A stretch of 64,000 nt of DNA, from NCBI GenBank assembly GCA_965202585.1, contig OZ241830.1, forward strand, positions 26,288,001-26,352,000. Direction: 5' to 3'. How positions within the stretch are numbered: the first letter of the stretch is position 1; each line of letters opens with the position of its first letter. The notes under the pieces are model-generated. The model was not told the DNA's origin, did not search any database, and saw nothing but the letters and a program-made list of their open reading frames with translations. A program made the translations under genes and the position numbers. Origin of the DNA: Thalia democratica. Lineage: Eukaryota. This document shows positions 41,001 through 64,000 of this stretch, in pieces.

Positions 41001-41245
41001 GTTTTTTTTTGCTTAACTTTTTTACTTTTTTCTCTATTGTTATTTAGTAAGGTAAGAGAATGCTAGAATACTATTAATCATGCTAAGGTTTTTGCTTTAG
41101 TTCAATATATCTTCATTTTTATTAATTTAAATTATAAAAAGAAGTTTTTCAGTATAACTTTATATTTTGATTATTGTTTACAGAACTTTATAAAAAGTAT
41201 TTAGTTTAATACTTGTCAGGAAAATAACACTGAGTGAAAATTGTA

Positions 41246-44200
41246 ATGTTTGGTTCAAAAGAACGAATCTCACAATTGAAATTTATCAATGAAAAAGGTT
41301 ATAATATGCAGCGAATCAACAAAATTCGAAACAAAAATCCTCATAAGAAAGTTATGAAGAAAAAAGCTACGAATGAATCTACTTGTAAATTTAAACCAGT
41401 GGATCAGTTAAACGAAGGAAAGGAAAATAATAATAAAAATACAGGTTTTTTGTGTTGTTCTACTTACTACAGAGTAAATATAAAACTAAATATGCAGGTA
41501 AAAGACTTAAGCGCTTTACATTTTATTGTTTTTGATTTAAAAAAAGTTAGACAAATTAATTTAGATGTCATATCATTATTTTATTTTATTAGTATATGTG
41601 AGAATCTTTTATTAAAACTAAAGTGATTTTAGAGAATTTTTTAAAATCTTAAATTATTAATTTTAATTGTAAAAACCATAAAGTTTTTTTACAAGTTACG
41701 AATTAAACTAATCAAAACGGATTAAACATTCTATAATTAACTTTAAAAAAACATTTTTCTTTTAAAGAGTTATATGTTAACGTATGCTGCAATATTTTTA
41801 TATAGTTCTAAATTTTTCAAACAGACAGCAATTTTGACTCAAAAGAGGTGCAAAATTTAGTTCAACTTTTGATGAAACGAAAATGCGAACTACAAGCGTT
41901 GACGTTTTGGAACGATAAACTTCTGAACCAACTTAAGCATATGAGTAAGTTTTTAAAAGAAAAAAATCTTAGCAGCATTATATGTTTAAAAGTTTGAAAA
42001 AAGTATAAGAGAATTAAAATTTAAGATCTTTGGTAACAACGATTTAAAACTAAACTTGTAAAATTAAGCTTTTTTTTTCATATATAAATATGCATTATAT
42101 ATTTAAAAAAAATATATATTAAAAAAACTTAAAAATAAGTTTTAAATTTTATATAAGTAAATTCTTAGTATTAAATGTTTCAAGTAATAAAAAAAATGAA
42201 TTATAACAGCACAATCTGGAATTCCTGTTCTCGACCCAACCAAGCTAATAAAATATAATCAAATTAACTCAAATAAACACGACAAATTGCCACAAGAAAC
42301 AGTTGACTTGCAACAAAAAGTGAACGAGTTGCAAAAAGCACCAGTAAGTTCTACAACTTACTCAATATTTGTATCAAAGTTTGAACCCACAATTAAACAA
42401 ACCAATAGCGCATTCTAGCGGTTATTTTCATAAACAAAACGCAAATAACCAACAAGCTCTTGTGAAGCAGGCTGGTGCATCAGCACTGAAAAGTAGCCAG
42501 TATCCCACACAACAAGCTGCTCATGCTCAAAAATCATTTGAGTCAAGTCAAGTTCCACGTAAGTTGAATAAAGTGTTTTATATATTTATGCGTATTTTGA
42601 AAGTTTTCGAAGTAAAATTTTGTACTGTATTCTTACTATAATCAGTTTCATATTAAAAAGATAAAGCTACGATATACTTACTTAATAATGTGTGATGTTG
42701 TACTTTCTTTTACTATAAACTCTCAGAAGGTAATCAAATTACAGTTTTAATTAACAATGAAAGACTCAAAACAGCATTAATTAGAATATTTTTTTTTATT
42801 ATCTTAAATATGTTATTTAAAACCTATGGTGTAATTTCCAATGATTGGTGTTAGTGGTTTTGTGAAATTCCATGAAACTTAAAATGTTTGCTAACGTTGT
42901 TATAATTTGTTGTAAGCTTTGCTATTATTTCATATGTAGGTAGAAGTAATTATGTTGCTGAAAGTCCAACTTCAGCTGACAAAACAATTCCTGCTCAACT
43001 TTTTGTCAACTCAAAAGTTCACAAACATCAACAACCATTGAATCAGACTTTACAGCAGAATGCGGGAAAGTTGTTTCCGTTGCTACAGAAACAAATTGCT
43101 GAAAAAAGCGGATTGTACAAACTACATAACTTTTGTTAGTTTCCTCAAGTAAGCATTATCGCCCATCAAGGCTCGTTTTCGTCTGTCAGGAAGTACTAAT
43201 TAGTAAGGCGGTGAAAAAGTTAATAAGTAGATTAGTATTAAAAAGGCCATATTGAAAAAACGTTTCGTTTTTTTTAATTTCTGCCAAAGTAGCGTTTATT
43301 AAAAAAAGTTTGGGGCACCCTGAACTAGATGGGGACTTGTCAAATACGCACGGAGACGCTTTTGCTCGAAAGATCCTTTTGCTAGGGAGTGAAAATAATT
43401 ACAATTATAATTAGAAAGTTATATAAAAGACAAATTACCGACTAAGAGTAAGGGTTAGGTGAAACAGTTATAGTAAAAAAGTAAAATTAAATTAAAAAAA
43501 CAAAATTTTGACCTGTGCGAGGTGTCTTCGCGCAAAAGTGCTCATTTAAAAGTGACCCTTCGTGCGAAATTAACGCCGTTTTAAAATTGTCTTTGAACAA
43601 AAATTACCCTTCGTGTAAAAGTGACTTTTGTGCGAAAGTGTCTATGTGCAAAAAAGTGTTAGTGCACAAGTGACCTAACACTTGTATGCATACTTGACTT
43701 ATACCCGTAGTAAATAGACAAATGGTTGTAAACTTATTTAAGCATGTTAATAATAAAGTTTACTGCGTTGTTATTACATATTGTTCGTTTTATAACGCTG
43801 TTAAAAAGTGTTTGTTAATTTAAATACGATTAATTATTGATAACTGAAGTCTTTTGAAGTGTTAGTTTAGCTATTTTGTACAATAAGATTTTAAGTGTGC
43901 TGTAAAAAAAAAACTTTCTAAAATATTTATTTAAACTTGTGTATTTTGTTTTGTTTGAACACTGATTTAATAGATGATATATTGTTTATTTATGTTTTTT
44001 TTTGTTTTGCAAACAGTTCACCAATACAACGTTAACAACAGTTTGATAAACTTAACGAAAAACAAGCTTAAATATCTGGAAAAGAAGTTCATTGATTTCA
44101 GTTTTTACTTGACTGAACAAGAACGTAATTGTCTGGCTAATAATATCAATGTTGATGAAAAAATTGTAAGTTGATGTTAAATATTTTAATATACTGTGCG

Positions 44201-44675
44201 GTTAAACAAATACTTAAAACTATTTGTTTTAAATTAATTCTTACTAGAACTGGTTTTAGTTGTTTATATCTTTAGTAAACATAAAATACTGACTTTTAAA
44301 TGATCTTTGTTCAAAGTTTTTAGTGTTTATAACTTCTATTACTTTTTAATAAATGAAATCGAATGCTCGGAAACAATGGCCTTATAAACAAACCAAATAT
44401 TACAAGCAGTGTTTTGCAATGTAAAATAAATAAAAAGTTAATCTACAGCACTTAGTAAACTACAACTTTTAATGTTCATCCTATTTAACTTTAATGTTTT
44501 ATATTTCATTTTCATTTTGTAAATAAAACTTAAAATTTAGGTAGAGTTGTGGTTTGAACTGAGAAGAAATAATCTACCGAAAAATCCTGAGTTTAACATC
44601 AATGGATTTTTAGCTGAAAAACAAAAAGAATGCCAAGCAAGACAGAAAATACAGAACAAAATAGCTTTAAATTAA
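41246..44675 (+). CDS. Q/N-rich protein with a C-terminal highly divergent homeodomain
   Basis: Exons 41246-41444, 41825-41944, 42210-about 42343/42347, about 42409-42559, 42940-43134, 44017-44165, 44541-44675. The last two encode LTKNKLKYLEKKFIDFSFYLTEQERNCLANNINVDEKI|VELWFELRR, matching homeodomain L/F8, L13, L16, F20, Y25, L26, R31, L34, A35, E42, V45, W48, F49, R52, R53. The exon 3/4 junction has a phase problem. Confidence 0.8.
43200..43322. mobile_element. Truncated hAT element end in a homeobox-gene intron
   Basis: Ends in AAAAGTTTGGGGCACCCTG (hAT-type TIR, related to the 3792 terminus), followed by AACTAGAT; no left TIR found. Confidence 0.5.
43331..43681. mobile_element. Degenerate foldback MITE of the TGCACG/CGTGCA-array family
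   Basis: Starts GGGGAC; left GCACGG/GCTCGA units; central CCGACTAAGAGTAAGGGTTAGG core; right arm of about 17-bp (T)CGTGCAAAA-like units. Same family as 60525-61226, in the opposite orientation. Confidence 0.65.
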
Positions 44676-45049
44676 TACTAAACATAGTGTTGTGATCGTA
44701 TTAAAATAATACTAATATCTTTGATAAAGTTGTAGTTTTCTAGTGTTTATAATTCAAATATATTTTAAAAACTAATAAAACTATGATTTGTACAATTCCT
44801 CTCTCTTTAAAACTTTGGTTTCTTATTCAAACTTGGAAAAAAAGTATGATTAATTAATAGTAGTTTTAAGTGAAGTTTGTTTAATAGTGTTTATTATGAA
44901 TTTGTGCAATTGTTATAGTCTACATACTAGATATAATTATACTTAAGTCTCATTTAATTTATTAACTAGTATATTTCTATAACACTTACTTTACCACTAA
45001 CTTTTTCTAAGAGATATGTATATGGTGCTAACAATAACTTGATCTATTA

Positions 45050-47394
45050 TTAATGAAGAAGTGAAACGTTTCGTCTATTAAAACAAGTTTTTACTTTGTA
45101 TTATAATAACAAGGTTTTTGCTTTGTAGTTTTTGTCGACAATTGTTGGTTTTGTTAAAAATTATAGTTTGTTAAAAGTTATGATATTTTCAAGGTATAAA
45201 ATGTTTTTGAAATATGATAAATTACAAATAAATTAATTTACGTGTTAAACACGAATAGAAATTGTTGTAATATATAAGTGAAAAGAGAACGAAAAAACAA
45301 TTTTTGTATTTAATTAAGTAAAGTATATACAATAAGGTTAATCACAAAATACCAATATTTACTATCAATTGCAGGGTTTTCTAAACTTTTTCCCCCTTTA
45401 AAGAAACAAAAAATGACACCCTGACTCCCTCATCAAGATTAAAAACTACCAAAAAAATAGTTAAGACTTTTTTGTTCTTAATCAACAACTTCAAAATATC
45501 TAGTGTAAGTTTCAAATTAAGATATCATGGTCCCCTTGTTGCTACTTTACTGCTCATCCCCCTTTAGTGCTCATTGCCACATGAGTATCTATCCTTGTCC
45601 ACTTTAGGAAACATCAATCTATTTTTATGTTTTAAAAACATTTTAAATACTAATATTATATCTAAAACCATTAAACTTAAAATAGTTTCCTATAGAAAAC
45701 TTATTGGAATTTTTTTTCACATTATATAATAAAACACAGTTTTACAAGCTTGATGTATAAAAATTTAGACAAAAGTTAATTTTTTATTCTTCACAAAAAA
45801 TTAAAAAAAAAATCTATTCAATATATTTTAAGATAATATCAATATCTAAAACAACTTCATTTTGTAGCAAGTTTATCATAATGAACATGTTTCATACACA
45901 TTTAGGTTTTTTACTACTAATAGTTATAGACTAACTTGTATGAAATTAGTTGGTGACAATTTTCATAAATTTCTTCCAACTTTTTAACTACTAAATATAT
46001 GCGGTAGAAATAAATATAATCTTTATTTATAACATTTGATTATAGAGCTTAATTCACTTTTTTTGTGTTAAGTTTTTTCAAAAAGCGAGAAAGTAGTAGA
46101 AGAAAAAGTTTAGTTTAGATGTAATTTAAATAATATGATCCAGACTTAAACGTATCGTATAGTTGTGAAAACTATTCTCAAATGTCTCATTATGGTGACT
46201 ATTAAGTAAATTATTTCTAATAACAATTAAATATAGCATTTAATAAAAATTACAGAAATAAAAGCTTATTTTTAGTGACTTAAAGATAAGCAAATAATGC
46301 AAGCATGTAAAATAAGTTACTTTTTTCAGCTTAACAAAAATATTGATTTAAAAGTATAAGTAAGAGTTATTTACAATTAATAAACTTTTTCGATTGAAAT
46401 TAAAAACGAAATTACAAACAAAAATTTAAGTGATAGATTACAAGCTATTATATTATTAGTTTAATAAAAAGGTTTAACCATTAACATTAAAACAAGTTAG
46501 AAAAGGTGGGTTTATTTTTTATTATTTATTAAAAGTTGTCATTAACTAAGCATAAAAATTCAAAAAATAGTTTTTTATCACTAAAGCTATATTGCAATAC
46601 TTAAAATAGTTTCATCTGTTTAGATAAAGGGCATAGACACTTACCCAAAGCAGTACGTGCAGTACTATATGCTAAAAAAGTAAAACCAATATTGCTAAGT
46701 GATGTCTATAAAAGAAACAATTTTTTTTTCATTCTAATATTATTTAGTAACTAATTATTTTAATTCTTTAAATATTTTAAATGAATTGTCTGTTTTGTTA
46801 AGGTTTAATAAAAATAAAATTATTCAGGAAACGGTATATGTATTTAACTTATATTTTGTAAAAGCTGTTAGTGTTTTAGTTTAGAAAATATAAGTTAAAC
46901 CTTAAAGTTTATTTCTGTAGGAAAAACTTCAGCTTAAGCTTAATCGATAGAAAAAAATGTTTCACTTTAGTTTAAACAGATTTTGTCCCAATCTATATAA
47001 AAAGTTGATTACTTAATGTTTTAAAATGAAATGACTACAATCTTAATATTTTGCTACGTATTCCAAATAAAACATAATTTACAAAATATCAAATAAATTT
47101 TTGATCAGTTTATAAACACCACACTTTTAAATTAAAGGTACTATTTAATTTTAAGGTAAGTTAAAATACTAATTTCATATGATAGAAATGTAGCAGCATC
47201 ATCAACACTTTTGCTAGCTTTTAACTGGATGTCAAAATAACATACTAAACCAAAAAAGTATACTTTAACTTTTTCATAAACTAATAGAAATATAAAGTTT
47301 TGTAATGTATAAAAATATTTTAATTAATTTAGATATGTAGAGTACACACAAACCAGCCCTTTGCATTTCTAGTCGACATATGTCAACTTGACGA
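45050..47394 (-). CDS. Candidate small-exon gene of unknown function (3' part only), convergent with the homeobox gene
   Basis: Chain of short exons with matching phases: 47394-47355 (RQVDICRLEMQRA), 47280 or 47224-47170 (...LKASKSVDDAATFLSYEI), 46671-46645 (TYSTARTAL), 45987-45936 (VKKLEEIYENCHQLISY), 45074-45050 (KRNVSLLH stop). 5' exons not found; no homology recognised. Confidence 0.4.
45372..45615. mobile_element. Old degenerate copy of the 3419-3792 hAT MITE family, reverse orientation
   Basis: Begins CAGGGTTTTCTAAACTTT and ends CCACTTTAGGAAACATC; internal CCCCTTTAGTGCTCATTGCCACATGAGTATCT matches the reverse complement of about 3460-3495. Confidence 0.7.
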
Positions 47395-62561: not shown

Positions 62562-64000
62562 ATGATGGCAACAACGAACTGCTTTGACCCACTTCTAGCA
62601 GCAGGAAACAGTTTTATGACCAACCAACCGTTAACTTCCGGAATAAGTCAACCGTGTAAGATATATGACGTCACAAATCAACAAAACTTTTCAGCTACAA
62701 ATGGTCATTACATTAATGGTAACACATTGAATTTTTCGAACGGTATAATAGATTATTCGTTGTTAAATTCGGATTTCAATGACAATCAGGTTTGATTTGG
62801 TATAAAAAACTTATAAACAGCTACTAAATTAAATAGAATTTATTGAAATTTATTTTATTGAATATATTTTTCTCTTCGGATTTAGGGTGTAGCCTTAAAA
62901 AAACAATAGTGACCTCATATAAATATATTAAAAAAGGCTTCTTATAAAATTGTAATAAAAATAACGAACTGTTTTATAAACTTTATCAAGTTTTATAATG
63001 AAAATTTCGTTAATCTTTCTAGGTAGCTGTACAAACTGCTATCAACGCAGGCAAAATTCATCAAAATCTGCAGCTGCAAAGCTTCCAGCAATACCTACCT
63101 GCAATAGGGAACCCAGAAAGTAGAGCAAACTACCAGCAAATTACTTTAGCCAACACTCACAAGTCAGTGCAAAATGACTATCAAACACAACAAAAGAACA
63201 ATCTTGCTGTTGTTAACCAACAACAAATGCAGATGTTCCAGCAAAATGTTAATGACAAGTGTTACAACACAAGTTCTGTACAAAATCAAAATGTCAACCT
63301 AGGACTTGGGCAACATCAGTTTGCACAACAACCACAAATACAACAAGGTCAGCAGCATATTCCGTTGGTTCAAAATAACCAAACAAATACATTTTTGTTG
63401 AGTTTTATTCTTGAAAAACTAAAAAGTGTAACCTTATTTATTCTAACAGATCAAAAAAAAAGATATCCTCAGCAATACTTAATGCCACGAACTCACTCAC
63501 TTCATCAAACCAACGTGCAGAATAATGCTGGTATGAGCTTACACTTGAATTTTAAATTAGTATCTAAAAATTATTTATTTGCTTTTGTTAACAGACCTGA
63601 TAGCTGTACAACATAGTGGTGACCCTTTGCTAGTAAACAACAGACGAAAGGTAATAAAACAGACAGTTTTGTATTTAACTGGGAAATCGATCATTTTTAT
63701 GTACAAACTTTTTTTTTAGATTAGTGAAGCTGTGCTTTCAAGCTCAAACATTAAGAATTTTAATTTTGAATCATCTGACGGTGAAAGACCAGGACAGTAA
63801 GGATGTTTTATTTCTTAGAGCATTTACGACTTCTAGTAAATATACTCATTAACTCTAATATATAAAACTTTTATTTTTTATTAGAACAAAAATAAAGAGA
63901 GTAAAAAGTTTTGTATTATTTTTTTACAAACATGCGCATCAAATTTGAAATATGTTATAACTCCTTTTAGGACTCGTGTGAAATTTACAAGACTGCAGTT
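62562..64000 (+). CDS. Q-rich protein, probable homeobox transcription factor, truncated by the window end
   Basis: Phase-consistent exons 62562-62789, 63023-63530 (may contain a short intron), 63595-63650, 63720-63796, 63971 to end. The spliced end reads ...SSDGERPGQ-TRVKFTRLQ(L/F), matching homeodomain N-terminal arm and helix 1 positions R5, F8, T9, Q12, L13. The rest of the domain lies outside the window. Confidence 0.7.

Follow-up and report, generated by a model that had tools for sequence, protein, structure and literature searches.

The window analysed here is a 64,000-nucleotide stretch of the Thalia democratica genome (assembly GCA_965202585.1, contig OZ241830.1, positions 26,288,001 to 26,352,000 of the forward strand). 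It carries a protein-coding gene of at least five exons at 41825–44675 on the forward strand, and its product is about 300 residues long. A conserved N-terminal motif is followed by a fast-evolving middle region rich in glutamine and serine (Q/S-rich) and, at the C-terminal end, by an atypical ANTP-like homeodomain with a conserved extra helix after it. An earlier reading of the letters and their open reading frames (ORFs), referred to here as the sequence-only reading, had proposed a homeodomain split by an intron. Splicing of 44019–44165 to 44541–44675 (forward strand) gives a 93-residue peptide that is identical to the one in that reading. Its first part, HQYNVNNSLINLTKNKLKYLEKKFIDFSFYLTEQERNCLANNINVDEKI, is the translation of 44019–44165 and its second part, VELWFELRRNNLPKNPEFNINGFLAEKQKECQARQKIQNKIALN followed by a stop, is the translation of 44541–44675. 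The splice signals are canonical, with an acceptor cag ending before 44017, a donor gtaagt following 44165, and an acceptor tag ending before 44541; the stop codon is at 44673–44675.

The spliced peptide matches the Pfam Homeodomain profile (PF00046) at 31.7 bits (E 1.4e-7), over profile positions 6–52 of 57, against a curated cut-off of 22.9 bits. The profile search suggested in the sequence-only reading therefore supports the domain. Exon 4 alone scores 20.2 bits on the same profile and is under the cut-off. No significant Pfam family was found with exons 1–3, with exon 5 alone, or with the exon pieces of the related copies on contig C7 described below. The best sequence matches in the PDB are all homeodomains, led by Engrailed, HoxA9, Abd-B, HoxC9, Ftz and Cdx, and nearly all are of the ANTP class, scoring 20–31 bits with up to 41% identity over 46 residues (best 60 of 106 matches). 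The nearest canonical homeobox in the organism's own genome is no better than E 0.09. From these matches the domain appears to resemble the ANTP class without a place in a named family.

The predicted fold is that of a homeodomain. The AlphaFold2 prediction was made with the single sequence and with an alignment (A1) of 28 rows, in which the spliced peptide stands beside exon pieces of the relatives and homeodomains retrieved by the protein search. With the single sequence the predicted local distance difference test score (pLDDT) is 50, which is too low for the fold to be judged, and four helices are already visible. With A1 the pLDDT is 91.3 and the predicted template modelling score (pTM) is 0.81, with helices at residues 14–26, 33–42 and 47–59 and a fourth at 69–92. 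The top 50 Foldseek matches in the PDB are all homeodomains, at 0.6–1.1 Å over 47–52 residues and with template modelling scores (TM) by target of up to 0.93; Engrailed is among the matches superposed at 0.6–1.1 Å. Likewise, the top 43 VIA-align matches against 48,161 PDB representatives are all homeodomains (Z 5.3–8.3). The three-helix fold that the sequence-only reading had expected is thus recovered in the model and in its structural neighbours. The AlphaFold DB clusters returned ordinary homeodomains only, and the four-helix arrangement is unmatched there (TM by query at most 0.56). The domain is a genuine homeodomain by the profile and the fold of the superfamily, but not by its DNA-contact residues.

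In A1, the V encoded at 44031 is homeodomain position 1. This gives L5, L8, L13, L16, F20, Y25, R31, L34, E42, V45, W48, F49, E50, L51, R52 and R53. The domain is 61 residues long, having one extra residue in the loop between helix 1 and helix 2. The residue numbering, the list of kept and lost residues, the intron at 44/45 and the one-residue loop insertion of the earlier reading are all correct in this alignment. Membership of the TALE superclass, which requires three extra residues between helices 1 and 2, is rejected on the single residue found here. ANTP-class homeodomains (Engrailed, posterior Hox domains such as HoxA9 and Abd-B, Cdx and Ftz) share the helix layout and the core residues L16, F20, Y25, L34, W48, F49 and R53. 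An intron at 44/45 is also found in several ANTP-class genes. The differences from the ANTP class are in length, with the extra loop residue, in a helix 3 that is shortened by LPKNP, ends early at L56-P57 and is followed by the conserved fourth helix, and in the residues that face DNA.

Asparagine 51 and the arginines of the N-terminal arm are the main base contacts of homeodomains. Here the near-invariant N51 is L, Q50 is E and R5 is L, and positions 1–9 contain no K or R, so that there is no basic N-terminal arm. Neither Asn51 nor the basic-arm residues that contact the minor groove (R3/R5) are present in the orthologues on contigs L021 and L033 either. The net charge of the 61-residue domain is +2, compared with +3 in the orthologue, –4 to +1 in the C7 copies, and +4 to +11 in the eleven WFQNRR-type homeodomains in A1. 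Since N51 and the arm arginines are replaced, classical recognition of TAAT sites is unlikely, and sequence and charge together suggest that classical DNA binding has been lost.

A search of 1.84 billion representative proteins for close relatives gave a sole close match, a 42-residue ORF (P0002) from ENA marine metagenomes. The remaining matches are unrelated multi-homeodomain proteins with scores summed over many domains, and were rejected. The contigs of P0002 (L021–L029), of which several belong to Tara Oceans assemblies, can be aligned to 41603–45944 of the window, with about 72% identity in noncoding sequence and 84–87% in exons. In L021 the five exons listed in Table 1 form one continuous open frame over all four junctions, which counted from the first ATG is about 309 codons long, and every splice site is conserved. 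Four of the five exons are equal in length in the two species. The acceptor and donor of exon 1 are kept, with 90% nucleotide identity, and the splice sites of exon 3 are also conserved, its frame running on into exon 4. Exon 4 is 86.6% identical to L021 without gaps, while the next intron is 71% identical with 64 gap columns. A third and closer taxon, represented by the Tara contigs L033/L034, includes the whole of exon 5 and the last part of exon 4, with 94% identity in the exons and 86% in the intron. Exon 5 is free of gaps in both comparisons, at 84% identity to L021 and 94% to L033.

The donor GTAAGT and the acceptor TAG/GTAGAG of the intron at 44166–44540 are conserved in L021 and L033. 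The joining of 44165 to 44541 is predicted from this conservation of splice sites and frame. The helix 3 motif WFELRR is present in all three taxa, so E50 and L51 are fixed. A word-index search with exon 5 found only two ORFs, and no relative was found in the JGI metagenome contigs. As had been proposed, this is a lineage-restricted homeobox gene, with exons, splice sites and frame kept in two other taxa. It is confined to a small group of planktonic tunicates, and the only record of the two other taxa is in Tara Oceans plankton contigs. This homeobox family was not found described in the literature searched.

Table 1. Features of the homeobox gene in the window, with the matching exons of orthologue contig L021 and the ratio of non-synonymous to synonymous substitution (dN/dS; window versus L021, NG86)
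Feature	Window	Strand	Length (nt), window/L021	L021	dN/dS	Description
Exon 1	41825–41944	+	120/120	255–374	0.18	Coding; encodes conserved motif ..KRKCEL.ALTFWNDKLLNQLKHM
Exon 2	42210–42558	+	349/351	627–977	0.71 and 0.67 (two halves)	Q/S-rich, fast-evolving; one open frame in L021
Exon 3	42940–43134	+	195/195	1339–1533	0.34	Linker ending ..LYKLHNF; phase-1 donor T/GTTAGT
Intron 3, repeat part	43141–43963					High-copy repeat, missing from the orthologue (does not align to L021)
Exon 4	44017–44165	+	149/149	2179–2327	0.11	Homeodomain positions 1–44: non-basic N-terminal arm, helix 1, loop with 1-residue insertion, helix 2
Intron	44166–44540	+				GT..AG, at homeodomain position 44/45
Exon 5	44541–44675	+	135/135	2743–2877	0.12	Helix 3 (VELWFELRRNN), turn LPKNPEF, fourth helix (residues 69–92 of 93), stop codon

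The exons that encode the homeodomain are under strong purifying selection. The 41 substitutions in exons 4 and 5 cause 17 amino-acid changes, against 27.6 expected at random placement (permutation p = 5e-5), and 95% of random placements of these substitutions create a stop codon. Constraint is equal beyond homeodomain position 60, the fourth helix included (0.122/0.925). Neutral decay in orthologues had been named beforehand as the mark of a pseudogene; at a dN/dS of 0.11–0.12, and in view of the permutation result, a pseudogene is rejected for the homeodomain exons. It is a lineage-specific homeobox gene, with a function that is probably non-classical, rather than a dead copy. Two positions in exon 5 differ among the sequences. 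At 44605 all three sequencing runs read A (G70E), as does the distant orthologue. At 44668 one haplotype reads A, which ends the protein two codons sooner, and the same early stop is found in the third taxon, L033. The last residues are therefore not constrained.

The first in-frame ATG of exon 1 is located at different codons in the window species and in L021. A further upstream exon is therefore likely, and the true start is probably there. An open frame of 130 codons lies at 41234–41626, just upstream of exon 1, and the orthologue contigs stop short of it. In this frame GAAAAAG is followed, at about 41297, by a possible phase-1 donor through which the missing start codon could be supplied. 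Within intron 3, the summed contig depth is 350–1350 at 43260–43675, and repeat-like imperfect units are found at about 43500–43680. The tblastx matches of this repeat are scattered repeats near the C7 loci.

When the entire 802-Mb assembly was searched with the peptide, no second copy of the window gene came up, and about 10 paralogues were identified on contig C7, at 52.28–54.48 Mb (L003–L018). These copies read ..TKHQLVYLNVFFDSFGFYITNLERSILAKLIKVDEYL followed by IDEWFLKTRSKIPENPEFCTKQYLLDRYNECK... and share with the window gene the intron at the same codon, the one-residue loop insertion, the (I/L)PxNPE(F) turn, and a fourth helix with (Y/F)L....EC (NPEF..EC motif). BLASTP between the spliced window and C7 peptides gives 63.5 bits, with 41.6% identity over 77 ungapped residues; the range is 36–42% over 77–81 ungapped residues. 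The domain of the C7 copies is even more degenerate. They differ in scoring 17.8 bits on the Pfam profile, which is below the cut-off, and in carrying E47, L50, K51 and T52 (WFLKTR). They are also fast-evolving, with a dN/dS of 0.65–0.72 between two diverged copies. Of the C7 exon-2 matches, three are intact and seven contain a stop, L018 being a clear case in which W48 is a stop codon. None of the upstream exons of the window gene is shared with the C7 paralogues by tblastx. Within this lineage-specific family the window gene is constrained, has a single copy and is the member most like a homeodomain. The paralogues on another chromosome, the conservation of the fourth helix and a 2-nt frameshift in exon 2 are additions to what the sequence-only reading had noted.

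Fast-diverging homeobox genes confined to one lineage are already known, as are homeodomains that lack N51. HOPX is a homeodomain protein without DNA-binding activity and works via SRF and HDAC2 (PMC9179269). It is a 73-residue protein that consists of the domain alone (PMC4901127). Comparison with HOPX had been made from the outset, and stands as far as the fold without the residues for DNA binding is concerned. It does not extend to descent. Unlike HOPX, the window protein is about 300 residues long and encoded by at least five exons, with an extra helix as well as a Q/S-rich region. Among the best 60 of 106 PDB sequence matches HOP is absent, and for the HOP structure 1uhs the match to the model has Z 6.3, compared with up to 8.3 for ordinary homeodomains. 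Membership of the HOPX family is ruled out by the approximately 309 codons in five exons, by the nearest matches being of the ANTP class, and by 1uhs being a weaker match. The likeness to HOPX would therefore be one of mechanism, not of membership.

In two other groups position 51 is changed and the fold is retained. Among the ceramide synthase homeodomains, the CerS6 structures match the model at Z 5.9–6.0. The nematode multi-homeodomain proteins have WFQDRR, and two of them in A1 (P0001 and P0003) carry D51. Both groups are related in sequence to the window gene only through the generic domain, and their architectures differ from it.

The favoured interpretation, held with moderate confidence, is that this is a real gene of at least five exons, restricted to a small group of planktonic tunicates, with an atypical homeodomain that most likely lacks classical TAAT recognition and is a probable protein-contact module. 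The predicted three-helix fold and the hydrophobic core have been kept, and the classical DNA-reading residues have been replaced. Because the altered form is precisely what selection has maintained, classical recognition of TAAT-type sites by the domain has most likely been lost. Its main role would instead be to contact other proteins during transcriptional regulation, much as HOPX does, in a functional unit that includes the conserved turn (L/I)PxNPE(F/I) together with the fourth helix. The gene structure, the fold prediction, the residue changes, the conservation and the selection are direct results; from them the loss of classical DNA binding, a protein-protein role and a nuclear function are inferred.

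Several observations weigh against this interpretation. The confident AlphaFold2 fold was obtained with ordinary homeodomains in A1, which favours that fold, and without the alignment the pLDDT is the 50 given above. The start codon and the 5' exon of the model are provisional. The contig sets of three sequencing runs run across the intron, and there is no splice joint among them. The 2-nt deficit in exon 2 would truncate the reference protein ahead of the homeodomain. Finally, R52, R53, K10, K12, K14 and N55 are retained, so some contact with DNA or RNA is possible.

This last point bears on whether the protein is still a sequence-specific DNA-binding factor, which is unlikely but is the best placed of the alternatives. 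Here L47, E50, L51 and N54/N55, together with R52/R53 and the lysines of helix 1, would read a new site, and the Q-rich region would be an activation domain. The fold and the phosphate-contacting R53 are kept, N55, which is one helical turn past position 51, is conserved in all three taxa, and helix 3 is strongly constrained (exon 5 dN/dS 0.12). A Q-rich N-terminal region is also typical of transcription factors, and the neighbouring homeobox gene has one too. However, there is no basic N-terminal arm, E50 and L51 face the groove, and the net charge of +2 is below that of every WFQNRR-type homeodomain in A1 (+4 to +11). The C7 paralogues have E, L and K at positions 47, 50 and 51, with charges of –4 to +1. 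Since the window gene and the C7 copies differ at these positions and in charge, the family appears to have no conserved DNA-reading surface.

A further reading, somewhat more doubtful, is that the domain is a closed four-helix interaction module and that the window gene is the constrained founder of a fast-evolving family of about 10 copies in planktonic tunicates, with no direct action on DNA. In this case the proline-rich turn (L/I)PxNPE(F/I) would turn helix 4 back so that it lies against the side of helix 3 that once read DNA. Such a covering of helix 3 would explain why a leucine is both tolerated and conserved at position 51.

It is improbable that the gene in this genome is a recently inactivated copy, either a null allele or a young pseudogene, that was functional in the ancestor and has been broken by the exon 2 frameshift. 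The reference exon 2 is 2 nt shorter than L021 and both contigs of sequencing run X3, which carry 2 extra letters at 42357/42359. This deficit, near 42357–42359, shifts the frame and leads to a stop at 42416. A hand check found no canonical donor and acceptor pair that restores the frame, and the translations contain no in-frame ATG downstream of the frameshift from which a Met could be supplied. Several of the C7 paralogues are also broken. Against this, exons 4 and 5 are free of defects with a dN/dS of 0.11–0.12, and one X3 contig, otherwise near-identical to the window (3 mismatches in 440 nt), has an intact frame, which would limit the lesion to at most one allele or an assembly error. The deficit is itself unconfirmed, runs X1 and X2 having no contig at the site. 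Either the assembly is in error here, or the deficit belongs to one allele or is a recent null.

A chance likeness to a homeodomain in AT-rich noncoding DNA can be dismissed. The 24% G+C makes open frames rich in K, N, I, L and F common and exon 4 alone is below the Pfam cut-off, but the spliced peptide passes the curated cut-off, the paralogues share the intron site, and frame, splice sites and exon-over-intron conservation hold in three taxa, which refutes it. The base composition of the window is 24% G+C overall and 21–29% in 2-kb bins.

Other homeobox genes are present nearby and elsewhere in the assembly. A neighbouring Q-rich gene (L019), which runs from 62563 to the end of the window at 64000 and on to about 66470, has two PRD-like homeodomains. 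The first has WFNNKR and the second WFQNRR with a one-residue loop insertion, and both have introns at 46/47. This gene was considered as a tandem relative of the window gene and rejected on the 46/47 introns and the retention of N51. A first genome-wide look with PF00046 gave 870 candidates, and all of the 150 that were scored pass the cut-off. There are homeobox arrays of identically scoring copies, and long ORFs (470–920 aa) with several homeodomains each. Homeobox-rich regions are located on C4 at 36.18–36.71 Mb and 75.43–75.52 Mb, on C6 at 69.83–70.22 Mb, and on C7 at 50.9–51.8 Mb.

The mitochondrial COX1 gene was found at C1833:8315–9631 (L030:1501–2817). Its conserved Gly motifs are present only under table 13, in which AGA/AGG encodes Gly and TGA encodes Trp. 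Since COX1 reads properly only under the ascidian mitochondrial code, the animal is a tunicate and not a cnidarian. Its closest relatives are found in plankton metagenomes of Tara Oceans. COX1-like fragments with many stops, on C4 at 56.84–56.94 Mb and on C757, are probably nuclear copies of mitochondrial DNA.

As it stands this is a modest, lineage-specific case. Through it the orphan-like, sub-threshold C7 genes on another chromosome are tied to true homeoboxes, and it is one more instance of how greatly homeoboxes have expanded and diverged in this tunicate genome. Asn51 is the most conserved residue of a textbook DNA-reading module, and here N51, Q50 and the basic arm are all replaced under purifying selection that, in three taxa, is as strong as that on ordinary transcription factors. 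The gene is a natural test of what the homeodomain fold is capable of without classical DNA recognition.

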